The notes under the pieces: generated by a model
The model's input: only the letters and a program-made list of their open reading frames with translations
The model's database searches: none
Told to the model about the DNA's origin: nothing
Position numbers and translations under genes: made by a program
Shown: positions 16,303 to 62,626 of the stretch, in pieces
How positions within the stretch are numbered: the first letter of the stretch is position 1
Layout of the letters: every line of letters begins with the position of its first letter
NCBI GenBank assembly: GCA_977017575.1
Contig: CDRNVI010000009.1
Location: 62,001-126,000, forward strand
Reading direction: 5' to 3'
Source of the DNA: Paramoeba atlantica
Taxonomy: Eukaryota > Protista > Discosea
DNA: 64,000 bases

Positions 16303-17259
16303 ATGCACAGTACACCGAGTTATTTACGAAAGATTGCTATTGAAAAACTTGAAAACGGATTTTCACTTCGTAGAGTGGCCGCCGATTTAAACTTAAGCGC
16401 AGGAAATGTCAGCCGCATTAAAAATAAATATCTTCCATCGCTATCTAGACAACCAACCGGTCGCCCACGTAAGCTGAGTGATACTTGCCGTAGGCGCGTC
16501 CGCCGTCTCATCACTAGCGGCGCCGCAAAAGACGCAGTTGCCGCCAGCAAAAGGTTGAGAGACGAAGGTATTGCGGATGTTTGCCCGGAAACCATTCGGG
16601 TTTCCTTTCGTCAGCGTGGTATGAAGGGAAAGAAGAGGGTCAAGAAGCCCTACCTTACGAAACGTCACAAGGCTCTACGTCTTGCTTTTGCAAGAAAGTA
16701 CGAGCATTGGACGCACGCCGACTGGGGCCGTGTACTTTTCACGGATGAAACGAAGATCTGCCGTTTCGAGTCGAATGGTAGCCGGTGGGTTTGGGTAGAC
16801 TTTGGGGAGGAGCTGTCTGAGCGAAACACACAAGGTATGCTCAAGTATGGTGGCGGCTCCATCATGATATGGGGTTGCATGATGGAGCACGGTGTGGGAA
16901 CCATTGAGCTGGTTCACGGGAATATGAACGCCGAGCGGTACGTTCAAATACTGCAACAAAATTTGCCCCCTTCCCTACAAAAGCTGAGTGTCACGAAGGA
17001 TCGGATCGTCTTCCAACAGGATAACGATCCGAAGCACACGAGTAAGAAGGCTCGCGATTTTTTAAATTCGCAGGAGCTGTGTGTGCTTGACTGGCCCCCT
17101 CAGTCTCCCGACTTAAACCCCATAGAAAACCTATGGGTTGAACTGAAAAAGGCAACGGCAGATTACCCCGACCTACCCGCAGGAATGATCGAGTTATGGG
17201 AACGGGCCCAAAAAGCATGGGCGAAAGTTCCTCCAAGTGCATGCCTCCCTCTTGTCTAA
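16303..17259 (+). CDS. Tc1-family DD34E transposase (C-terminus slightly short)
   Basis: HTH domain, LFTDET, QQDNDPKH and WPPQSPDLNPIE, with 34 residues between D and E. A probable right TIR ends at ~17603; no left TIR was found. Confidence 0.92.
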   Translation: MHSTPSYLRKIAIEKLENGFSLRRVAADLNLSAGNVSRIKNKYLPSLSRQPTGRPRKLSDTCRRRVRRLITSGAAKDAVAASKRLRDEGIADVCPETIRVSFRQRGMKGKKRVKKPYLTKRHKALRLAFARKYEHWTHADWGRVLFTDETKICRFESNGSRWVWVDFGEELSERNTQGMLKYGGGSIMIWGCMMEHGVGTIELVHGNMNAERYVQILQQNLPPSLQKLSVTKDRIVFQQDNDPKHTSKKARDFLNSQELCVLDWPPQSPDLNPIENLWVELKKATADYPDLPAGMIELWERAQKAWAKVPPSACLPLV

Positions 17260-18273
17260 AGCATGCCCCGTCGTTTGAGGGCAGTCATCAGGGCGAAGAG
17301 AGGACTTACTAAGTATTAAGTCTAAACCATTTTGGTCCATTAAGGGTGAAGCAATAGAACGTTTTCCTATAAAAAAACATGTTCGAAAAAAAGTCAAAAA
17401 AGTGTTCATATGTTGGACTGACATTATATCTTTCATAGTTTTTTGTAGTAAGATCGTTGATGAACTCAAAGTACGTGGGGATATAAGCACTACCCCAGCC
17501 TACACTACTACCATATACTACAGCATTATCCTCTGATTCTCTTTGGTAAAAAATAACATCATTAAAAAATGTCGAAACATTTGAACACTTTTTTGAGTTA
17601 CTGTATATAGTATTATAAATCTATAAAAATCTATAACAGGAAAAAGTGCTCAAAAACGTTTTGATGTTCTCTTTTTGCACGAATGGCACCAAGTACAAAG
17701 TGAGTTTATGGCAGGCTCAGTCAAATTTCTTATGTTTCGCGGCAGAAAACATATTTTTCAGCTTTTTTGATTGTGCTTCTTCCGCCAAAGGAAGAAAAGA
17801 AGTTACAAGGACTCTTTTTTGAGGGAAAAAATCATCCAAACCCGCAGAAAATCCTTCAAAAAATTATAGATTTTTATATATAGTATTTGAAAAATTATAA
17901 TACTATATAGTACTAAATTATAGATTTTGTAGATTTTGTAGATTTTCAGACCCCTGTTAAAAATACCGGTCAAAAATCGTCATTTTGGCGAAACACCATA
18001 CTTTTTCCCAAAAAAATAAGTTTATGTCACTATGGACCCATTACTTATGATATGCGTGTAAAAATTGTTGTGGAGTACAATAAGAGGGCTGAAACCACCT
18101 GGGTTTGCCTGGGTTTGCTAATTTTCTATATTGTATTAGGCAACTCAGTTTCTTCCTTGGCGAAAGGCACAGTATATTTTTTAATGCTCTTTAATAGTAG
18201 CTTCTTTAAAGTAACTTATTTTTCTTAGATTTTGTACTTATCCTGAACATACCACGATAGAATAATATAAAAA

Positions 18274-19050
18274 ATGCTTCACTACGATCTTCCGCCTGAC
18301 GACGATGAGTTTATCGTGAATGAGTTTTCCTCTCCGGATTCCGAGAAATATGCCTCCCTCAGAAAATGGGTGGTGTTTACGTTGCGAGAAACGTTTCGCA
18401 TCCCTCTTGTCCGGACGGAAAGCACAATGCAATGGCTCCGCATGAGCAAGGCAGAGAAAGATGCCATGAAATACGCTCCAGAGCGTTTGCCACCCCCAGA
18501 GCTCATGTACCGCATGGAAGATAACATTGTCTCTCTGTGCGTCAAGTGGGTGACAGATAGGCTTCGCCTGATTTCTGATGCTGAGAGTAACGCTTCAGAA
18601 ACACTATGCAACGTTACGATTGACGGCGACATTCTGATTCATGGGTTAGTAATCCTCACTAAAGCCCGTACAACGGGACTGCTCTACTTCAAGGATTCCG
18701 AGCGCTCCGAAATTCACGGCGTTCGAGAGGAGGAGATGCCTGCGTATTGGCGTTGGAAGGTGACCGAGACTTGGTCCTTGGCAATTGAGGATCTACCTGC
18801 GGAAAGCATGGCCACTCACATGGTAGCTTTCTTGAAAGAAAAGTATAAAGGTGTATTCGAGAGCTCGAAGCGCGACCGAGAGCAACTAAGTGAGTGGTGT
18901 ACGACCATGTGGCGAAGCCACAACGTTCAAAGTGGTCAAAAGTACCGTGATCGAAGCAAGAAACTGAAAGAAAAAGTTGAAGTACCCACGACAGTGAGTG
19001 TCTGGCAAAAGCGGGAATTCCAGAATTTTTTCATCGCGTCGATGAATTAG
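18274..19050 (+). CDS. Hypothetical protein, possibly the accessory ORF of a Harbinger-like element
   Basis: 258-aa open frame that runs into the Harbinger transposase remnant. No recognisable domain. Confidence 0.4.
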   Translation: MLHYDLPPDDDEFIVNEFSSPDSEKYASLRKWVVFTLRETFRIPLVRTESTMQWLRMSKAEKDAMKYAPERLPPPELMYRMEDNIVSLCVKWVTDRLRLISDAESNASETLCNVTIDGDILIHGLVILTKARTTGLLYFKDSERSEIHGVREEEMPAYWRWKVTETWSLAIEDLPAESMATHMVAFLKEKYKGVFESSKRDREQLSEWCTTMWRSHNVQSGQKYRDRSKKLKEKVEVPTTVSVWQKREFQNFFIASMN

Positions 19051-19162
19051 TTATAGCTGATAAGGCCTACAAAAATGTTAGACACTGTCTTTGTCAGGAA
19101 ATCGGGTCCAACATAGATGAAGTCTACGACATGGAATTTCGTAGGATCCGAAACAGAGTCTA
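18981..19162 (+). pseudogene. PIF/Harbinger-like transposase remnant, part 1
   Basis: Manual translation STHDSECL...ELVIADKAY...EFRRIRNRV shows the HD and DxxY motifs. Interrupted by the hAT element at 19163. Confidence 0.75.
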
Positions 19163-19567
19163 CATAGTCTAACTAGTATTTTAGTATATACTATAGTATA
19201 TACTATGAGATACTACTTTTCGAAGGTGTCTATAATCTTATTAAGTGTCTATAGAAATGTAGTTTTTCCCTGTATATGAATGGAAAGATTTGTCTTTATT
19301 GCGACATTTAGGACTGGTACACAAGTATTGCTCAGCCTTTTTGTTTACACCTTATCACTTCCTTTAATCACCTTGTCACTCACTGTTTTAAATGACGCAA
19401 CGTTCAAAGAACTCGGAAAGCGCACCTTCAACCCCCACCCCCGAAAACACAAGAAAGCGACCGTCAGCACGGGAGCATCGCGAGAGAGTAGCCGCAATTA
19501 CGTCACAGTTAAAGGAGACACCTTCCCAAGTAGCGTTAAGTGCGTCCCTCTCTCCGCTTGAAGAGGA

Positions 19568-20991
19568 GGCGGATTGTCAACACCAACGCACCACTTTTTT
19601 TCCCAAAAAATAATTTTCTTGTCATTTCCAGTGCACCACTTTTTCTTAAAAACTGTATTCTCATTTCCAATGCACCATTAATTATTTAAAGAAGAATTAT
19701 TTTATAATATCCTTCGGATCTACACTACAAATGCGCCGTTATTCAAGACTCAGTCATTACGATCGTAATCGTATTCAATCACTCTTTACATCTGGCGAGA
19801 GTCGGCGAAGCATAGCTCGCATAATTGGCAAAAGTCACAGCACTGTTTGTCGCGAGTTGGCGCGTAATGCAAGAAGGGGTCAGCGCTATGAGGGGACGAG
19901 GGCACAGCGCATTTCGAAAAGACGCCTCTCGTGTAAAAAGGTCAAGCCTCACAAGATACAAGGCCTTTTGGAAGAGGAAGTCAGCTCTCGACTTCAAAAG
20001 AAGCACAGCCCGGAACAGATTGCAAATACGATCCGTAGCTGTCGTACCGCCTCGACTTCTACCATATATCGCCATATTCGTCGCAACGCGTCCTTAGGCG
20101 GCAAGTTGTACACCCATTTGCGGATCCGGCGAAAGAGGCCATACCGTCGTCGCACCAGACCTGATCGCAGCGCGATTCCCAACCGAACGCCACTTGAAAA
20201 TCGACCAGAAATTGTTAATAAGCGTCGGCGCTACGGCGATTGGGAAGCAGACTTGGTCGAGGGTCGAGGACATACCGGATATATTCTTACCCTGTGCGAG
20301 CGTAAGAGTCGCTTCCTTGTTCTTCGCAAGTTGGAATCTAAGCACGCGAAGGGGGTAAGCAAACAAATTGTAGACGGGTTAAAGAATTACAAGGTTCAAA
20401 CAATCACATACGACAACGGAACAGAATTCTGGCACCATGAAGAAGTAAACAAAAAATTAAAATGCAAGTCTTTCTTTTGCGCTCCATATCATTCGTGGGA
20501 GAAAGGGTCTGTGGAACATGCAAACGGTTTGATCCGACAATTCCATCAGAAAACCGAATCTTTTGAGAATTTGAACCAAAGTGAATTAAACAAAACAGCA
20601 TTGGAATTGAACACTCGTCCTCGGAAATTATTAAATTATCGTTCTCCAATGGATTTTGTGAATGAACTGCGTAAGTAAAAGAAGCTAAGTAAGCAAAGGT
20701 ACGTGAGAAAGCTTGTAAAGTTAGTCTGTTAGTGTTGGAAATTTAATGACAATAAATTTAAGCATTTTGTAAAGGTGAAGAAATTCTTGTCTAATAAAGT
20801 TTCTTACTCAGATCTTACACTTGTATTACACTTTCTTTAAATACTCTGGATAAGTTTTTATGTTGAAAGGAAAAAGGAACGATGTTCAACTATGGTGAGG
20901 CGCAGAAAAAAGGAATGACGGTCGACTATGGTGAAAAAAGTGGTGCGCTGGAGTTGACAATGGGGTGGTGCACTGGAGTTGAACATCCGGG
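19568..20991 (+). mobile_element. IS30-family insertion element (1424 bp)
   Basis: Imperfect TIRs: the left end matches the outer right repeat at 20/27 and the inner right repeat at 26/28. GGA direct repeat at 19565-19567 and 20992-20994. Confidence 0.88.
19731..20678 (+). CDS. IS30-family DDE transposase, intact
   Basis: 315 aa. HTH (RSIARIIGKSHSTVCRELARN), SPEQIA, STIYR, GDWEADLV, ITYDNGTEF, PYHSWEKGSVEHANGLIRQ; D-33-E spacing. Confidence 0.96.
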   Translation: MRRYSRLSHYDRNRIQSLFTSGESRRSIARIIGKSHSTVCRELARNARRGQRYEGTRAQRISKRRLSCKKVKPHKIQGLLEEEVSSRLQKKHSPEQIANTIRSCRTASTSTIYRHIRRNASLGGKLYTHLRIRRKRPYRRRTRPDRSAIPNRTPLENRPEIVNKRRRYGDWEADLVEGRGHTGYILTLCERKSRFLVLRKLESKHAKGVSKQIVDGLKNYKVQTITYDNGTEFWHHEEVNKKLKCKSFFCAPYHSWEKGSVEHANGLIRQFHQKTESFENLNQSELNKTALELNTRPRKLLNYRSPMDFVNELRK

Positions 20992-23610
20992 GGAGAATGC
21001 TCTCCAGAGAAAGAGAAAAAGCAACTGCGGGAACGATCCACTCGCTTGTGGAAGCCTCCGTCGACAGCAGCAATTAACGTACGAGCGATGCGATCTCGGC
21101 GTTGAGTCCTCTGGAAAATTGTGCCTCGAGTGGGCTCGGAAAAATGTCTCAGGCATCCGGAATGATACTATGGGCCACTCACAGCATGTTCGATGTAAAG
21201 TATGTGGGTGGGTGACCCATAGCAAGGGGGAGAATTTTTGTTATAAACATTTGAAAGAGTGCTGCTCGAAGGCGCAGCAGGGGATGGAAGACTCCAGTGA
21301 AGTTGCAAATCCCAAGTCGCTAGAGGAGTACATCTTCGAAGCTCTCCCATGTTTCGCAGCTCAGAGCAATCTTTCTACCGAAGGATTCCTCGAGTGCGTA
21401 AAGAACTTATTTCAAGAATTTCCCCCCGACATACATCCTTCAGAAGCTGCATCGATCCTTCCTTCTCCTCGCGAATTTCATATCAGTGAACGTTGAATTG
21501 CCGACATGATCTGGGAAGACATTCGACGAACCATAGATGGAGCTAAATTCTTTGGCCTCGCCATCGACGATGGAGTTGACAGGGTTCTTAGCGAACATGT
21601 ACTTATCGCCATTTTGTATGTTGTGGATCGCCACTTTATTCTCCCACCTATCTACCACCCTAAGCACAAATCATTTAACGGTAGCGAGATGGCACAATTC
21701 CTGATAGAAGTACTTCGGTCATGCCTCTCCGAGAGCCGACTCCTAAAGTTGCGATTCATAATGGCAGACGGAGCCCCAGTAAATAATGTGGCTAGGCAGG
21801 AAATAGAAACCACTATGTTAGGCATTCGTGACTCTCTTGTTTCCGCAGAGGAAGAATTTTACTCGCGCCTCAGCTCTATCGGAAGCACGGACCGGGAGAA
21901 CATTGTAATTGGCGTGACGAAGCACTGTCCACGTGTCGCGCTATTACCATGCTTCGGACACTTGTTTCATAATATGGCCAAAGATGCAGTGCAGCACTAC
22001 GCAAATCTGCCAATTATGAAAGTAAGAACATACTTCTCCAGGATTTTCTATGCAGGGGACCGTGTGGGGGCAAAGAAGGGGAAGTATTTCGGAAAAGCTC
22101 TTGAAGATATATTAAGCGCCTTTGACGAAGAGACTCAAAAAGCTGAATCGTACTTTAAATCTTTTTATCGTTCTGTGAACAGCGAAAAACTTGACAAGAG
22201 GGGTCGCAGGGACACCATAGCTCATCTCAAGGAAGCATTGCAAACTCTCTCGAAAGTATCTTTAAAGGCACGCGATGTGTTTGCCGAACTGAATCAAACT
22301 CTGGAAATGGAAGACCAATGTGAGATTCTAATTGCGAAAGGTGCTAGTGTGCTGAAATCCATTGCACATTCTCATGAAATTCGAGCCGTCACTTCTCCCA
22401 AACTTGGCGGGGTCACGCGGTGGCTCGCGGATAAATTCGAAAGCATGAGGTTTTTGGCTGATCAGTTGCCTACTGTCCCATCCTTCATAAAAAGTGAACT
22501 GGAAACTCTGCGAGCCCCTCAATCTGTCCACCATTTGGCTGATTTGTTCGAAAACAACTCTTTGAACGACTTGATGCAGTCTGCGAAGGATTTCCTGAAA
22601 GACTGTATGCCGTTACGCATCGCACAAGAAAAATTCTCTGACATGCAGGATCGTCCTATGGCAACTCTTGTTCATCCAACTTTGCGACAGCTTGTCGAGT
22701 CTGCTGAGAATTCACCCAGGCATTTCTTAGAGTCGATACATCGGCACGTCAATAGAGTATGCTCAAACCACGAGATGAAGGTATGGGCAGCTGTGATGTG
22801 GTTTTCGCCTGAGTGGATCGTCTTATCCGCTCGACCTCGCAAGAAGGAATCCCTTTCAGTGGAATGGATAAATGATTTGTTGGGAACTGGCGACCCGATT
22901 TTCGACATTACTATTGAGGAATGGAGTACGTACGTAAACTGCGACGATTACCAGTGGACACCCGGCATGAGCGATCTTGAGTGGTGGCAAACACTTGGGT
23001 TGAAACATTTTCCGACAATTTTTGAAGCTGCATTGCATTACCTATGGCTTCCTCCGCTAGTGACGGCATGTGACTCTATCCTTTCGGTGCTTTCCTGGAA
23101 ATATTGTGCCCGTCAAGCTCGCATTGGAACAGATGTTGTAGCGACACAAATGTTTCTTCGCGGAAACGAGAACCCGCTACCGTATCGTACAAGTCGTGCA
23201 AAAAAGGCGGCAAAGCGTGGATCTGACATGGAACACTCCATATAAAATAATATCGAACTACATGGCGCACAGAGTATCATACATATAGAGTATCGTAGCA
23301 TACAGGGTATACATTGCGGTAAATATCAATTGAATTGCGGTAAATATAATATGTGGTAATATTGCGATAATATTCGTACGTCCAGAGCTCCGTTTTGTGG
23401 TATTTCTTCTCCGTATCTGAGATATTTTTCTCTGTTTTTTTTCTCAGTGTTCAACAAGCGAAATACTTTTTTCGTCCACAGCAACGGTTTATTGTACTAT
23501 TATGCACTATGTATTGACGTCGGAACTGGGTTCTGTGGTTTAACTCAGTGTCGTGTAAGTCCTTGAAGTATTCCTTCAGGTATCTTTATCAATTCAGAAT
23601 GGAATTTCAA

Positions 23611-26034: not shown

Positions 26035-28236
26035 TCAGTCTCTGCATATTCCACCGCATAATTCCTTCCAGCACGGTAATTGCAGGTGATATAATTTACG
26101 CAGACTAGGTCGCGTAATCAGTTTTGTGTATGTTTCCCGCAGGCTTTGTATTTCGTGGAGTTGACGAGGCGGAAGATTTGTCGTATTACACAGTTTCTGT
26201 GAGATATGCGATCCCGATTGAACCTCTTTGGTTGAACAATCTTCGAATATTCCTCCAACAATCTTCTCCAGTATGGCCCCACGTGGGACTGCTTCTGAGG
26301 CCCCAGATATGCAAGGGCTTCCAGGGTGAATTTCTTCCAGATTCAACACATCTTTAACTCTTGTTTTGCTTCCCTTGGGCCGGCCGCGTGGGCGCTCCGG
26401 GCCTGGGTTTCCCTCTATCGTCGAGTCTGCTTGGATCTGAAGTGACCCGAGATCCAACGAACCTGAAGGTGTGAACTTTCTTCCGGGGGGTCGGCCCCTC
26501 TTCTTACCCGGTCCGGGGTTGCTTTCAATGCAGCCTCGGATCAGCTGGGTGCGTACTTGCGCTTTGGACCAACCAGAGTTGGCGATGACGTTTTTAGTTG
26601 ACCGGAAACACCACACTGCCCGTGGGCCGGGGTTGCTCTCAATACCCCCTCTTATTAACCATGTATGAACTTGGTCTTTGGACCAGCCAGTTTCTGATGA
26701 CAGAACTTCCGGTGGCCTAAAGCACCACCATGAAACCCCGCTCGCATCCTTAATTTGTTCCCAGGATTTTGACAAAGAAAGTTCAATGCCTAGAAAGTGG
26801 CAGATAGCAACAGGGTACTCAACCGGCGCTACACCCTCAGGTATACGGATTGGGTGATCTTCAATTTGACAATAAATTGGGATTTCGTTGCCTGACTTTT
26901 CTCCTGGTGGGGCCTTGATAGTAGCCCCGTACACGCATTCCGTCGTCGGGGGACCGATAATCCCAGAGAGAGGTAACTCTTCATATGAGGTGGGATCCAC
27001 GATTTGAATAAGGCCGTTTGGGAGTTGAATTGTGGCTGCCACGTGATCTCGGAGCAATCCAAGTGACGCGCTTGGGCTGAGCCCTGTTACCAGGACGTGG
27101 GACGTTTTCTCCGGTTCCAGGAACAACGCCACTTTGGTCACATAGGATGCATGAGTCTCCGAATCAAGGGAAGAAATATCATCTTCATCCCACTCGCCGC
27201 CGAAACCACCTGGTTCGTCAATGGAAGGCCTAGAACTGGGGGTAGCACGTTTAGGGGGCGGCGCACGTTCGAGGTGGAGGTGGGTAACGCGAGGAAGAAA
27301 TCGCGACGCGATGTGGAGGCTGGAATCTTCCTCTTGATTTATTATGCGATCTCGCATTTTGGTATATGACAAAAACAAGCTTTCTCTTTTCAGCGCCTGA
27401 GATTGAATAAATCTCGCATTTTGCTTCTCCCTAGCGGCGGAGTGCGACCGCTGATGTTCCTCCAGGGAAGACTGATCCATAAATTTGCGATGGCATGTGG
27501 AACAAATGTGGCCACCGCGCTCGACAATCCGCAGTGCATTTTGGCACTGCTGCTGCAGGTTTAACATGTGGTGCATGTGTTGTTCCTGCAGACGCCGAGC
27601 TTGTAACATCCACTTGTATTCTAGCTTGAGACTCTGAGTCTGTAACTTGTGGATTGCAATCATATTATGAAGAGCGCCGTACTTGGCGACTTCCTGAGTC
27701 TGAAGCTCCCGCTTCAGTTCCCCAAACCGTTCTGCAAAGGACTTCCCTGGTTTCAGCGCTTTCGGTTTAGAGGCCACTTGGTCGTCATCTAGGCGTGAAG
27801 TCCCACCTGCGCGCTTGGGGAAGGGAGACAAGCGGGACGTGGTGGAAGTCCCGTAGTTCGACTTTGCGGGTTTTTTGGACTCTTTGAGAGAATGACCAGC
27901 TGTCAAGTGTGAATAAGTCAGACGTGATGGAGCCTTCTTGTCCTCATTCGAGCTGCCCTTCGAGAAACGAAGAGACGAAAACGGATTGTGAACTGCGGGA
28001 GCTGGATCAAGTCGTTTTTGAGATTCTGTGAGATCCCCCTTGGAACTATTGGCCGGGCGTTTACCTGCACGACCAGACGGTACATTCGCGTTGTCCACAT
28101 TCGCGAGCGTTTGGAGACCACGAATACGATGGTCCCCCCGGCGAAGGTTGTGAGCAACTGTTCTCTTTTCGGAGAGAGAGGAAATGAAAGACGTAAAAAG
28201 TTGAAATAGATCTTCAGTCTTCACTCCTGCCACCAT
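26035..28236 (-). CDS. Retrotransposon N-terminal ORF: C2H2 finger, three 2A-like motifs, two AT-hooks
   Basis: CSTCHRKF...LEEHQRSH; GGIESNPGP, GCIESNPGP and STIEGNPGP; KRGRPP and PRGRPK. Confidence 0.8.
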   Translation of the reverse strand: MVAGVKTEDLFQLFTSFISSLSEKRTVAHNLRRGDHRIRGLQTLANVDNANVPSGRAGKRPANSSKGDLTESQKRLDPAPAVHNPFSSLRFSKGSSNEDKKAPSRLTYSHLTAGHSLKESKKPAKSNYGTSTTSRLSPFPKRAGGTSRLDDDQVASKPKALKPGKSFAERFGELKRELQTQEVAKYGALHNMIAIHKLQTQSLKLEYKWMLQARRLQEQHMHHMLNLQQQCQNALRIVERGGHICSTCHRKFMDQSSLEEHQRSHSAAREKQNARFIQSQALKRESLFLSYTKMRDRIINQEEDSSLHIASRFLPRVTHLHLERAPPPKRATPSSRPSIDEPGGFGGEWDEDDISSLDSETHASYVTKVALFLEPEKTSHVLVTGLSPSASLGLLRDHVAATIQLPNGLIQIVDPTSYEELPLSGIIGPPTTECVYGATIKAPPGEKSGNEIPIYCQIEDHPIRIPEGVAPVEYPVAICHFLGIELSLSKSWEQIKDASGVSWWCFRPPEVLSSETGWSKDQVHTWLIRGGIESNPGPRAVWCFRSTKNVIANSGWSKAQVRTQLIRGCIESNPGPGKKRGRPPGRKFTPSGSLDLGSLQIQADSTIEGNPGPERPRGRPKGSKTRVKDVLNLEEIHPGSPCISGASEAVPRGAILEKIVGGIFEDCSTKEVQSGSHISQKLCNTTNLPPRQLHEIQSLRETYTKLITRPSLRKLYHLQLPCWKELCGGICRD

Positions 28237-28969
28237 TGGCTCCTTAGCGCCGAGAAAACATTTCGGACAGATTTTGTACGCATTATTCGCTTGAATCGGC
28301 GATCACAATCACGGCATGTTCTCTTGGGGAATTCCCAGGCGGGCATGTGGGAGTGAGAGACTAGAAGTAAAACAACAAGGAATGGAATCAACAAGGTACA
28401 TAAACTGTAATCTTTATTGTTAATTCAGAATAACATATAAATAAATATTTATGCATTGATGAAAATAGCCACGTTTAGTATTTTTTATTACACTACAATA
28501 TATTAATTTTATTCGTATATTCGTGCTACACGCTCTTGATCTGTTTCTTTTCTTACATCATATACCAATGAAAAATATGTGAGGAAGCGTTTATGCGCGG
28601 AATGCGAGATCTGAGCTCCTTTCACCCCTCAACTCACTTTTTCACGCACTCGACTCAACTTTCGCTCAGGATAAGCATCCTTTCACCTCTCTGTGCGCAT
28701 CTGCGCTGTGGTAAACCAAATCAATTCCTGATTTTTAAGGAAGTTTATTGGTTAATTTGTTAAGTAACTGTTGGAGAATGAAGCATTCAGCATATTCTTC
28801 TGCTTCCTTTGTCTTGAACGTTGAATTGCTTGAGGTTTTCCATGCGTCCGTTGATTACGATTAGTAAATACCCAGTCTACAAAAAAGTAGTATCTCATAG
28901 TATATACTATAGTATATACTAGCTGAATACTAGTGTTTTAGTATATACTAGTATACTAGTTAGACTATG

Positions 28970-49694: not shown

Positions 49695-51257
49695 CAGTGG
49701 TGTTCAGCCTCTTTTACCCCCCCCCCCCTACAGGTCTTGTATTTTGTCCGATTTTGGAAATATTTGGTATAACACCGTTTTTCGACCCAATCGTTCCGAA
49801 TCCGAAGTCCTTTTCACTCGAGCGACCCTCTACCCCCCCTAGCCAGGTAGGGGTCAAAAAAGCTAATTGCGGCTTTTTTCGGGGCATTTTTTCGAATTTT
49901 TCGGATGAATATGAGTAGTAAAGTAGGTCAGAAGACGTGGAAAAAGAGTACAAAGTAATCTCTTTTTCATTTAGTCATATGCCCTTTGGCCTCCTTGACC
50001 AAAAGTAAACGTTTACGATAGTTCCGGAAGATATTCTTAAACGTTTCCGGTTGATCTTCGGAAAAAAACGAAAAGTTTCAATGATGGACTCCGAAGTTGA
50101 GTCCTGTTTCGGGGTTTCAGCACATCCTTTACGCGGCGAGACATCGCTGCCCACGCCGTTTCAACGGGGTTTAAATCAGGGGAGAGAGGGGGGAAGTCAA
50201 GACGACGTTTCAGATACTTTTTTTTAACAATCGAGTGGGTGGGGGCGTTGTCCATTTGTAGGATGGGCTTCCGGTGCGAACGAAAAAAACTGGCCATGCC
50301 ACTTTCTTCAAAAGCCAGTAAAATCTGTTCGGAGTTAACAGAAGCACCCTGTTCTCCCTCAAAGATGAAGAAGAACAGACCGTAGTTATAGGAATACCCC
50401 ATCCACACCATTATCCCTCTCCCCCCAAAATGTTTTCCCCGCCGGTCCGATTGCCTCAGACACCTCGGTGCTCGCTTGCGACCGACGTAAAAATCGGTGT
50501 TTGACCCCGCACAGCACCTGAACAGTTTTTCGTCGGTAAAAACAATGTTCAGGTAGTCAGCGTCACTCCACTTAAGCATGTCCTTCACATACTTAAGAGG
50601 GAGTTGAATGTGACGCGGTTTGAGACCAAGGTCTTTGGCCTTGCGAAGGCGCCCATAGCCCTTAAAATTAAGAGCTCGCCGGACACTACTCAGGGAGCTT
50701 CCGTGATTGCTTCGCACCTCGCGATGCACGACAGAGAACGTAGGACAACCCTCCACGGTATCCTTCGACACTCTCCGGCACGCAGAAACACATGCTTCAA
50801 CGTACCTTTGTGTAAGGACCGTACGCACCCCCTCGCGAGGTGGAGTACTGACATGCCCGTGCTCCTCATACTTCCGCACCCAATACTTTACAGTCCTGGG
50901 GGCAAGCTTATGGAGTTTTGCGACTGCCTTATAGGACTTAAGTCGCTCGTAATCGATTACGAGTGCCGTGCGCATCTCGGGGCGCACGCGGGAGGAAGGT
51001 AAACACAGAGGGCGGTGCCTCTTCGTCATGAATCACCAATAAATGTACCAATTTTGAAAAAAATGTACTCTGTGAAAAACAAATCGACTTTTTTGCAGTT
51101 TTTTTTTCCGGTTTAGGTATGATACAGGTGTCCACGTGTGAAAAGGACCTCGGATTCGGAACGATTGGGTCGAAAAACAGTCCCATACAAAATATTTCCA
51201 AAATCGGACAAATTACAAGACCTGTAGTGGGGGGGTAAAAGAGGCTGAACACTACTG
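49695..51257 (-). mobile_element. Tc1-like element with ~130-bp TIRs
   Basis: TA|CAGTGGTGTTCAGCCTCTTTTACCCC...GGGGTAAAAGAGGCTGAACACTACTG|TA. Confidence 0.93.
50037..51029 (-). CDS. Tc1/IS630-like transposase with D29E spacing
   Basis: HTH domain, VFTDEK, IMVWMG, LQMDNAPTH and FPPLSPDLNPVE. The C-terminus may be frameshifted. Confidence 0.9.
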   Translation of the reverse strand: MTKRHRPLCLPSSRVRPEMRTALVIDYERLKSYKAVAKLHKLAPRTVKYWVRKYEEHGHVSTPPREGVRTVLTQRYVEACVSACRRVSKDTVEGCPTFSVVHREVRSNHGSSLSSVRRALNFKGYGRLRKAKDLGLKPRHIQLPLKYVKDMLKWSDADYLNIVFTDEKLFRCCAGSNTDFYVGRKRAPRCLRQSDRRGKHFGGRGIMVWMGYSYNYGLFFFIFEGEQGASVNSEQILLAFEESGMASFFRSHRKPILQMDNAPTHSIVKKKYLKRRLDFPPLSPDLNPVETAWAAMSRRVKDVLKPRNRTQLRSPSLKLFVFFRRSTGNV

Positions 51258-56349: not shown

Positions 56350-58476
56350 CATACCCCTTCCGGGTCGATGGGTAATTACCCATTAGCGGGTCTGTGCGGG
56401 TAAATTACCCAGGTCTGTGACCCAGTTACCCGCATAGACCCACACAGACCCGCATCGGCGCACTAGCCATTAAATACAAAATGATTTCCTCTCAAGTGTG
56501 CTGATTCGTAGGATTGGCACGGAATGCTCTATGTACAGAAAAGGTATCTTTAGCGATGAGGAATTCCTTTCATAAGAAGAATTCCCTCTACTGATTTGCT
56601 TCTGTCGCCCATCTATTTTTTTTTTTACCTTTTTTTTGGTGTGAACCCCCTAGGCCCACCGTAAGCCTACCCCCTAACACCGCGATGGTACCAATTCTAT
56701 TTTTTTTTTTTTGGCCAGTCGAGCTTACCCTCGAGTCCTAGCAAACTAAGGTGAAACTATAAAGAATCACCACATAGAAAACATTTATACGGCAGTGTAT
56801 GATACTGTGATACTATGCATGGCATTAATATCATATTAATAACAATAAAATACTATGCATTAATCATTACTGCATAATAGATTCATCTTCTTCGACATCA
56901 GATACTTCAACATCGCTACCATCCTGAGAAACACCTTCGTCCGGAAGAATATAACCCAATTTGTCGCAATTTCCACGCACGAAGATCTGGTGAGAAACGA
57001 CATCAGGAGCCAAGGAAGCCTGTGTGGAACTGTACATGTACCCGATTATAGACAGCCACGAATCTCATCTGTTAACTAAGGGAGGCGTCCATACGTAGTG
57101 CGTAGCCGCTTCGCAAACAGAGGGAAACATCTCACTTAAAAGCTTGACTCAAAGCTTTTTTAAAGGCGAAGCACGGCAGCTCTTCGTATGGTTTCAAGGC
57201 TGTTTGGCAAACATTGTTTAGCATATGTTCGATGCAAGATAGGAGAGTAATGCGCGGCACTCGAGAAGAAATACCGCGCAACAGCGCAGTCGTATCAGAC
57301 TCACCAATGAGTGTAATCGGATCGTATATTCGCTTGAGATCGCCTTCACAGTGGTTTCTGGCCACGTGATTTACAGCACCGCCGTCCGCAATAATGTATC
57401 TCATTTTGAGCAAACGAATTTCACCAAGGTTCGCCAGAAGAGTAGAAATCAACTGCTCAGCTGCCGTCTTTCAGTCAAAGGCACGATGCCTTGGAGAATA
57501 TATCGGTGGTAAGACACACTCTTCTGGCCCAACGTACAGCACAGACAACAAGACATGTTCAGCCTTTACCTTGTCAATGCCCGCGTCTACGGCAATTCCA
57601 TAGAGCTTACGCGAGTCTACGTCGGCAGAAAGTTTTCCCCATATGTCATGCGACAGCACTTCACAATAGTGGTGCCACTTCTTTAAATTTGTTCCCGGAA
57701 GGGCTCTTTTTATCATTGTTCCAGGTACATCAGGGCGTAAATCCTCGTACTTATGCACGAGCCAGACAAACCGATTAGAAGAAAGATTCGTTAGGGTCTG
57801 TAAGCATGGCAGTAGTTTTCCTACGAAGCGCTGTACAATTACTCCCTGATTATTTGCACTCTCCACCTGTGCCAATCGGGAATTTTCAAGAGATTTTGAG
57901 CACTCGCGGCGATGCTTGTGATACACATTTTTATAGGGAGAGTGAGATTCAAATGCGCATTCTTCCTTGGTACATATGAAATGAAGCTTTTGGCCCAAAG
58001 GATCGGTGAGAATATCTGTGTGTGTGTGGGTGCATCCGGGAGGACAGCGCACGAGCACGAATTGCCCAGATAAGGATTCTACTGTCATTTTGTGCCGTAT
58101 AGTATCGCGATGCTTCATTTTTTTTGACTCAGGGGTATTACCATCTTCAGTATCAGATGACGAAAATAATTCAGGCGTGCTAGGTGTCTGCTCTAATCGT
58201 CGTTGACGAGCCATGAGTACAGATAAGTTTAGGTAAGAAGAGATTAGTTAGTGCGATCAAACACAAGAGTAATATGATTATTGACTTCTTACTTAGCCAT
58301 AAAACACTTCACCATAAGGTCCGAAACAAAGATGCATGTTTATTTCCCGATGACAAGATTCAACAAACAGGTGTATACATGTATATGTAGCTTTCTAAGA
58401 CAACCTGTCAATGCGGGTCGGTGCGGGTAACTGGCTCGCAGACCCGGGTAATTACCCATTTACCCGACAGGGGTAT
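56350..58476 (-). mobile_element. Internally deleted hAT-family element with 6-bp TSD
   Basis: TIRs CATACCCCTTCCGGGTCGATGGGTAATTACCC / GGGTAATTACCCATTTACCCGACAGGGTATG. Perfect TSD ACAAGA at 56344-56349 and 58477-58482. Confidence 0.92.
56867..58214 (-). pseudogene. hAT transposase remnant homologous to 19392-23245
   Basis: GIAVDAG..EHVL..LPPIY, IIADG, CIEH and a C-terminal FPSV..HYVWTPPLV segment. Two TGA stops and a large internal deletion at ~57130. Confidence 0.88.
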
Positions 58477-61463: not shown

Positions 61464-62626
61464 ATGAATGGTGAAAAATGGAAGTGCACGAAGTCTTGCA
61501 AAGGGATATATGAGAAGACGGGTCCACTGTTGCCGGACAGGGCGCAGCGAAGCACTAAACAAACACTGAAGTACATTGTACTTTACGTTCGGGGAAATAG
61601 ACATGAGGTGTCTGTTGCAGAGACGGAGCTCAGTGAGAAAACAATTATATCACTACGCCAGTGGATTGATTCCATCATGGCAACTTGTCATGTGCGTCGA
61701 CGCGCCCGACAAAGAGAGAGCGTCCACTCGATGCAGTGTGATGAAACTTTTTTCTCGGTTCGGAAACGTCACCGAGGTAGTCACGGTGCGAGGCGCGTGC
61801 GCGCAGAAGGTACGCAAGTACAGTGCGCCCAGATAGTAAAGTTTTTTTTAGTAGTTACCACCGATTTACTAAAAAAACTTAACTATTACTATTAACTAGA
61901 ACTACTAAAAAAACTTTACTATTTAGGAAAACCGTTTTTTGGGACTTTACTAACTGGGCAATCAATTGTCGTTGAAGCACAGAGAAAAACCTTTCTCTGT
62001 TTTTCAAACCTTGTTTTCGCTTTTCGAGACATGCCCAACGTCTCCCTTCGTCGTTTTTCGTCTTTTTCAATGGAACACTTTCCAACGCAAGTTGTATGCG
62101 AATGTCCGTTGTCAAAATTTACAAAAAAGAGAAAAACTCTAAAAAAAGGTAGCTACTAAAAAAACTTTACTATTTGGGAAAACCGTTTTTTGGGACTTTA
62201 CTAACTGGGCGCACTGTAGCCCAAACGGTTGCGGTGACGACTCGAAACAACAAGTTATCCGAAATTTTAATGCAAGTAGTACCAGATCGCACTTCCGGTT
62301 CTCTTGTCCCCGGAATTACAGAACTAGCCGCAGGAGAACGTACCAGAATTTGGACAGATGGCGCTTGTCACAATGTTTGTCTCGGGGAGAACTACAAGTG
62401 GGAAAGCGTAAACCACCGTCGACAGTGGGTCACAGAGGGAGGTGTGCACACAAACACTGTGGAGTGTGCGAACTCAATCCTCAAGAAGCGTTCAAAGCGT
62501 GATGGTGGTGTGTTGGGTCGGAAAGTCGCCCGGAGAGAAGATCGGGTGCAGGCCTACGCAGAGAAGGGAAGCGGAAGTTTGAAGTGTAATGGGGGGGATG
62601 CTTTGTTGCGCGTGCTTGAAAATTAG
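61464..62626 (+). pseudogene. Merlin (IS1595-like) transposase interrupted by a MITE
   Basis: WKCTKSC, QCDETFF..RKRHRG, IWTDG, VNHR and GVHTNTVE. The frame is restored (TQVAQTV) when 61821-62218 is removed. Confidence 0.88.
61821..62216. mobile_element. 396-bp Tc1/mariner-type MITE
   Basis: TA|CAGTGCGCCCAG...CTGGGCGCACTG|TA, with an internal duplicate of the right end at ~61897-61960. Confidence 0.9.

Follow-up and report, generated by a model that had tools for sequence, protein, structure and literature searches.

A complete insertion sequence (IS) of the IS30 family, 1,424 bp long and carrying a single open reading frame (ORF), is present in the protist Paramoeba atlantica (assembly GCA_977017575.1). 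It occupies positions 19568-20991 of a stretch of 64,000 nucleotides, positions 62,001 to 126,000 of contig CDRNVI010000009.1, which was analysed as a whole and is called the window here. The element is very probably an autonomous DNA transposon resident in the nuclear genome of this unicellular eukaryote, where it has also moved from place to place. Its lineage most likely came once from a bacterium and split within the host into three or more subfamilies, and the window copy is an intact member of the youngest of them. It would be the first IS30 lineage described as resident in a eukaryotic genome, the family having so far been reported only from bacteria and archaea.

An IS30-family transposase between IS30-type ends

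The ORF is open throughout and encodes a protein of 315 residues. It matches the NCBIfam model for IS30 transposases (NF033563, transpos_IS30) with 245.3 bits against a cut-off of 80, over the entire profile (positions 1-267 of 267), and a related protein from an older subfamily of the same genome (P0004, subfamily B) reaches 162.6 bits with the same model. Matches to the Pfam families HTH_38 (residues 3-46, E 1e-13) and rve (residues 167-255) are also found. The catalytic residues D174, D228 and E262, with 33 residues between the second D and the E, sit in conserved DWEAD, YDNGTEF and SWEKGSVEHANG motifs that align with those of bacterial relatives. At E <=0.001, the NCBIfam matches are to IS30, IS481 and IS21 only. 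The IS481 model (NF033577) gives 58 bits against a cut-off of 224, which argues against an IS481, IS481EU or Ginger-type assignment, and the same list of matches offers nothing for Zator/ISAzo13, a eukaryotic superfamily with 3-bp duplications. A comparison with solved structures gave no match by sequence. A basic stretch after residue 140, RIRRKRPYRRR, was considered as a newly gained nuclear signal and rejected, because bacterial relatives carry the same stretch.

The element starts with GGCGGATTGTCAAC and ends with GTTGAACATCCGGG, and homology to three other copies begins and ends precisely at its first and last bases. Its inverted repeats are imperfect, with arms of 25-33 nt that are 80% complementary in one pairing (19570-19594 with 20965-20989) and 88% in another (19573-19605 with 20929-20961), which fits the ends of about 20-30 bp typical of IS30. 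The terminal GGCGGATT of the left inverted repeat is common to the protist element and its bacterial relatives, and the core reads TTGTCAACACCAACGCACCAC. Within the window, the 21-mer end core is confined to the ends of the element, and chance would produce none; the end-core motif is present in three copies on the left and two on the right. The element is flanked by a direct repeat of GGA, a 3-bp target-site duplication within the 2-3 bp range of IS30. An alternative reading, with a 2-bp GG duplication around CGGAT...ATCCG ends, was rejected because the 3-bp reading is perfect in all four copies of the subfamily and different in each.

Altogether, profile, catalytic motif, inverted ends and 3-bp duplication make this element a full member of the IS30 family. 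The first-pass annotation of this DNA had described a complete 315-residue IS30 transposase with a helix-turn-helix and a D-33-E signature, imperfect terminal inverted repeats around it and a GGA duplication at its flanks, and these descriptions hold.

By analogy with other IS30 elements, the N-terminal helix-turn-helix of the transposase would bind the end-core motif of about 21-26 bp, at three sites on the left and two on the right, the additional left copies being presumed extra binding sites. The DDE domain would cut at the GG...GG termini, and insertion of the element into a 3-bp staggered cut in the target would produce the 3-bp duplication. The enzyme is expected to work in the nucleus.

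Copies of the element and their insertion sites

When a collection of 5.8 billion proteins was searched, the best match, 98% identical, came from a second contig of the same ENA assembly. Looking for further copies and their duplications, as the first-pass annotation had proposed, brought up three copies in all on other contigs, the one on that contig included, each with a 3-bp duplication of its own (Table 1). Both ends are intact in four of four subfamily-A copies, homology stops at the same two bases each time, and the flanks are mutually unrelated in the three copies compared (window, L001 and L003). In the public reads, loose ends at the right terminus lead into at least two further flanks and so point to additional insertion sites. 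Because the four copies carry four different 3-bp duplications and the reads contain an exact empty site, the element has moved repeatedly within this genome. One of the copies, L068, retains both ends around an internal deletion at a CGGAA microhomology. Its position is immediately downstream of an ORF for reverse transcriptase, and it could represent either a non-autonomous form or the product of gap repair. A contig from one public run (X2) omits 216 bases inside the element (19596-19813, from the end of the left repeat into the start of the ORF), which suggests another deletion variant somewhere in the genome.

The two intact ORFs, those of the window and L001, differ at nine synonymous and five non-synonymous positions. 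The ratio of non-synonymous to synonymous differences per site (pN/pS) is 0.16 (binomial p = 0.0009 against neutrality), and comparisons involving a frameshifted copy give 0.4-0.6. Purifying selection acted between the two intact copies, and the lineages behind both insertions therefore encoded a working protein while they diverged in the genome.

Older loci were found through searches with the 58%-identical protein P0004 and with an N-terminal fragment, and all come from the same assembly. They form subfamilies B and C, whose proteins are about 53-58% identical to the window transposase, or about 52-65% over tblastn segments. The L069 copy of subfamily C measures about 1,455 bp and is flanked by an ACT duplication. 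All three subfamilies have a GGyGGATT terminus followed by a TCA...CAGTGCAmCA core; among the ends that could be read, the layout is three cores on the left and two on the right in subfamilies A and C, and two on the left in subfamily B. The aligned 3' regions of the three subfamilies contain no convincing conserved block.

The window copy interrupts another gene. When the element and one GGA are deleted, a single open frame, M...LSPLEEENALQRKRKS..., extends from 19392 to a stop at 21494, so that excision restores the host frame as the first-pass annotation had claimed. For independent evidence on the site, contigs of four public runs of the same organism (X1-X4; unitigs built with k=31) were compared with positions 18000-23000 of the window. 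Runs X1 and X2 each have two contigs in which 19564 is followed directly by 20992, so that 1,427 bases are skipped, the 1,424 of the element plus 3. Contigs of run X3 have matching loose ends on both sides of the empty site, and one contig of run X4 extends for 30 letters from the flank into the element, across the filled left junction.

The interrupted gene may be called hAT-like, on weak evidence. Its neighbours in a protein language model are nearly all hAT-type, with scores of about 0.90, and the match to Dimer_Tnp_hAT (residues 482-553) lies at the expected C-terminal position and below threshold (E 0.052, 13.8 bits against a cut-off of 21.4). The earlier description of a eukaryotic hAT transposase rests on these neighbours and on a Pfam hit below the cut-off. 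The second hAT-like copy of the window, a fragmentary one at 56900-58019 on the minus strand, is 26-44% identical. The interrupted copy also has a TGA stop where contigs of all four runs have C at 21494 (CGA, Arg); therefore, the family consensus is one long ORF of roughly 800 residues, and the hAT-like copy of the window is doubly disabled.

The surroundings are eukaryotic at every IS30 locus. The window contains a eukaryote-type poly(A) polymerase, a ubiquitin-UBA protein, leucine-rich repeat proteins, two Tc1/mariner transposases and reverse transcriptases of the non-LTR (long terminal repeat) type. Other IS30 copies adjoin ORFs with PAZ/Piwi (Argonaute) domains, a WD40 protein, polyubiquitin, a Merlin-type (IS1595-like) transposase and retrotransposons. 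IS30 copies from a prey or symbiont bacterium might nevertheless have been mis-joined to eukaryotic sequence, as bacterivorous protists get sequenced along with bacteria and the short-read unitigs across the filled junction are just 30 letters deep. Such contamination or assembly chimerism is highly improbable: at least seven loci lie on different long contigs, all with eukaryotic neighbours, each subfamily-A copy has a perfect 3-bp duplication, excision restores the host reading frame and the exact empty site is present in the reads. Moreover, no bacterial protein among the 5.8 billion is more than 49% identical, and the GC content at third codon positions (GC3) matches that of the host. The jump of an IS from a cloning host into cloned DNA, a route by which IS elements are known to enter eukaryotic records (Gilbert and Cordaux 2013, PMC3673617), has a still smaller, practically negligible probability. 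The contig names suggest a long-read assembly made without cloning, the copies differ by 2-3% and include frameshifted and deleted forms in addition to two older subfamilies, and nothing close is found in bacteria.

Table 1. Positions of the element, its parts, the gene it interrupts and the related copies in the assembly. Positions refer to the window unless a locus (L-number) is given.
Feature	Position	Strand	Observations
Complete IS30-family element, subfamily A, reference copy	19568..20991	+	Homology limits shared with the L001, L003 and L068 copies; intact ORF; duplication GGA
Left target-site duplication GGA	19565..19567	.	Empty-site joint skips element plus 3 bases
Right target-site duplication GGA	20992..20994	.	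Empty-site joint skips element plus 3 bases
Left terminal inverted repeat	19568..19599	+	Inverted-repeat pairs I1 and I3; bacterial ends GGTGGATTC... or GGCGGATTC...
Two extra direct end-core copies	19619-19644, 19658-19683	+	Family D1, 81% and 69% identical to the terminal copy
Transposase ORF, 315 residues, intact	19731..20678	+	HTH_38 at nt 19737-19868; D174 at 20250-20252; D228 at 20412-20414; E262 at 20514-20516
AT-rich 3' non-coding region with a weaker tandem pair (20868-20898, 20904-20934)	20679..20934	+	
Right end: tandem end-core copies 20940-20964 and 20965-20989, then terminal CCGGG	20935..20991	-	Family D4, inverted pairs I1-I3
Upstream part of interrupted hAT-like gene (N-terminus)	19392..19567	+	Joined to 20995 onward gives an open frame; multi-copy in reads
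Downstream part of interrupted hAT-like gene	20995..23245	+	Own TGA stop at 21494-21496
Subfamily A copy, 98.1% identity to window copy	L001:9838-11262		Intact ORF; duplication CCT
Subfamily A copy, 97.4% identity to window copy	L003:4389-5811		Two frameshifts; duplication TTT
Subfamily A copy, 98-99% identity over retained parts	L068:5838-6650		813 bp, element positions 449-1054 lost; duplication GTT
Subfamily B copies, 92% identical to each other	L002:9755-10925, L071:3983-5075		Frameshifted, right ends lost
Subfamily C copies, 93-94% identical to each other	L069:3860-5314, L070:3915-5110		Frameshifted

Bacterial relatives and earlier cases of transfer

Outside this assembly, identity to the transposase reaches at most 49% anywhere in the 5.8-billion collection, assemblies of public runs included. 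In a set of representative genomes of bacteria and archaea, the best-matching named bacteria belong to the Verrucomicrobiota (Akkermansiaceae, Verrucomicrobiae, Opitutales), with 42-44% identity. The verrucomicrobial IS is 1,214 bp long, occurs in several identical copies in Verrucomicrobiae genomes, has ends that read GGTGGATTCAGG or GGCGGATTCAGG and makes 3-bp duplications. Like the protist element, it encodes a single transposase with HTH_38 and DDE domains and 33 residues between the second D and the E, and it has the terminal GGyGGATT, inverted ends of about 25 bp and 3-bp target duplications. Both the termini and the cutting geometry of the bacterial element have therefore been preserved in the protist one.

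The two differ in other respects, beyond the eukaryotic host and a protein identity to bacterial IS30 of only 42-49%. The end-core motif is repeated two to three times per readable end in the protist elements, whereas three bacterial comparators have a single inverted repeat at each end. The non-coding ends measure 163 bp (5') and 313 bp (3') in the protist element and 91 and 181 bp in the verrucomicrobial relative. The GC3 of the ORF is 46%, compared with 42-52% for host genes and about 70% for the verrucomicrobial relatives. As the first-pass annotation had noted in finding no obvious Shine-Dalgarno sequence, the protist element, unlike bacterial IS30, has no purine-rich ribosome-binding motif directly before the ATG when judged by eye. 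The same annotation had taken an AT-rich 3' region of about 310 bp as long for a bacterial IS30; the region is real (37% GC), but its length is not unusual for this branch of the family. The idea that it is a eukaryotic addition was rejected because the corresponding region has 181 bp in the verrucomicrobial relative and roughly 425 bp in the nearest metagenomic group, the ends of which are not cleanly defined. An Rfam search of the whole window gave no match.

The elements of that metagenomic group (L063-L066, carrying protein P0008) are about 1,440 bp long. They always contain an ORF of 129 codons antisense to the transposase gene and overlapping its 3' end, which has no Pfam family on record; the protist 3' region has no homology to it.

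A maximum-likelihood tree was built from 83 proteins, nine unrelated ORFs that had been picked by length being left out. The six protist proteins form one clade, with 100% ultrafast bootstrap and 100% support in the Shimodaira-Hasegawa-like approximate likelihood ratio test (SH-aLRT), on a stem of 0.84 changes per site, nested in bacterial and metagenomic IS30 diversity. The proposal of the first-pass annotation, a horizontally acquired IS30 that became mobile in this protist, is supported by this position at no more than 49% identity, the four duplications and the empty site. A bacterial origin of the lineage is supported by the tree, and the simplest reading would be a single old acquisition, after which the lineage diversified within its host. 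The length of the stem and the three subfamilies indicate that the acquisition is old rather than recent.

The long stem, the three subfamilies and the derived, repeated end cores that the three bacterial comparators lack could also be expected of an old eukaryotic superfamily, inherited or exchanged among poorly sampled eukaryotes, of which this genome would be the first one seen. This is improbable: the clade gains no further members from the 5.8-billion collection, those it has all come from one assembly, and it lies among bacterial sequences at 42-49% identity, much closer than the distances that typically separate IS families from eukaryotic superfamilies.

A search of the literature, as distinct from Repbase and ISfinder, did not bring up any paper on an IS30-family element living in a eukaryote, in agreement with the earlier annotation, which knew of no eukaryotic IS30 superfamily. 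When Gilbert and Cordaux (2013, PMC3673617) screened 431 eukaryote genomes with queries from every IS family, IS607 was all they recovered. IS30 is missing from the IS-to-eukaryote links listed in the IS481EU paper (Kojima and Bao 2023, PMC10045372) and goes unmentioned in a 2026 survey (PMC13343696). IS481EU (PMC10045372) and IS3EU are comparable cases, as eukaryote-resident clades of DDE transposase families that are otherwise prokaryotic; IS481EU nevertheless belongs to a different family, as the profile scores of the protist transposase make plain. The IS607-like elements of eukaryotes and IS5 in bdelloid rotifers (PMC3673617) are likewise transfers from prokaryotes to eukaryotes that were judged by eukaryotic flanks, but IS607 is a serine-recombinase element and neither belongs to IS30. 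The action of an IS30 transposase in a eukaryotic cell has been addressed with E. coli IS30 in zebrafish embryos, in an artificial, extrachromosomal assay (Szabo et al. 2003, cited in PMC1874657). According to the account of that work in PMC1874657, the IS30 fusion proteins were generally inactive and integration was mostly illegitimate. In contrast to that artificial test, the protist IS30 is a natural lineage that has multiplied in a genome.

For most prokaryotic IS families with eukaryotic counterparts, the link consists of distant similarity only, and the documented transfers of IS into eukaryotes are few (IS607, IS5, IS481EU). Here, the bacterial architecture is still recognisable in the termini, the duplication length and a protein identity of 42-49%, despite multiplication in a eukaryotic nucleus. 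The lineage offers a rare, fairly close-range view of the changes that an IS needs for survival in a eukaryote, candidates for which are the repeated, putative binding sites at the ends, the longer non-coding ends and the host-like base composition. It also provides a compact transposase of 315 residues with defined ends, which is presumably functional in a eukaryotic cell.

Activity, expression and neighbouring elements

Transposition via joined ends, as a minicircle or an IS dimer, is established for E. coli IS30. Several observations weigh against an autonomous transposon that is resident in this genome and has moved within it. No circle or head-to-tail junction was present among the contig joints, contigs being prone to drop rare forms. 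The one RNA run of the species contained none of the sequence words sampled. The copies are not consistently oriented with respect to neighbouring genes, so that read-through transcription offers no obvious explanation for expression. The empty-site joint, with 28 letters on its shorter side, and the filled left junction depend on overlaps of 28-30 letters, under the 31-letter rule applied for bridging; overlaps of 28 and 30 letters are those expected of k=31 unitigs at a repeat boundary. In addition, the contigs with the empty site show a few base differences from the window, and depth marks the flanking gene family as multi-copy; therefore, these contigs may be paralogous hAT-like copies rather than the other allele, and not evidence of present-day polymorphism. 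As to origin, the metagenomic sister group of the protist clade is weakly supported (89/65).

The family could be a relic, once mobile, with intact ORFs that have merely not yet decayed; subfamilies B and C are broken throughout, and two of the four subfamily-A copies are defective. This reading is rather unlikely, though it deserves more weight than the other alternatives, with two intact ORFs, copies that differ by only 2-3%, the signal of purifying selection between the intact copies and both ends preserved in all four subfamily-A copies standing against it.

A scan for sigma-70 promoters upstream of the ORF on the coding strand found nothing. The sequence GTAAGT, the consensus of eukaryotic 5' splice sites, is found at 20671-20676, running from the penultimate codon into the first base of the stop. 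It lies at or just past the transposase stop in all three protist subfamilies (window, L002, L071, L069) and in none of four bacterial comparators. It is possibly the donor of a candidate 3' intron, or a product of chance. About 130 nt further downstream in the window there is a pyrimidine tract that ends in AG. A wider proposal, to which we give slightly less than an even chance, is that a protist lineage acquired a bacterial IS30, which developed into a self-sustaining superfamily of eukaryotic DNA transposons, "IS30EU", with remodelled multi-site ends and still-active copies. Its promoter-less, bacterial-style gene would be expressed through host RNA processing, possibly by spliced-leader trans-splicing, and GTAAGT might mark a 3' intron.

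A spliced-leader-like 19-mer occurs elsewhere in the window, at 28389-28407 on the minus strand, about 150 nt upstream of a CRE-type retroelement (26035-28236) with an ORF of 733 codons. It is the sole match in the window to the kinetoplastid spliced-leader consensus, with three mismatches, and the match is weak because 4 of 100 shuffled sequences did as well. Tc1/mariner-type transposase ORFs (DDE_3) lie at 16303-17259 and 50037-51029, and transposon-derived DNA makes up much of the first 30 kb of the window and parts of the remainder.

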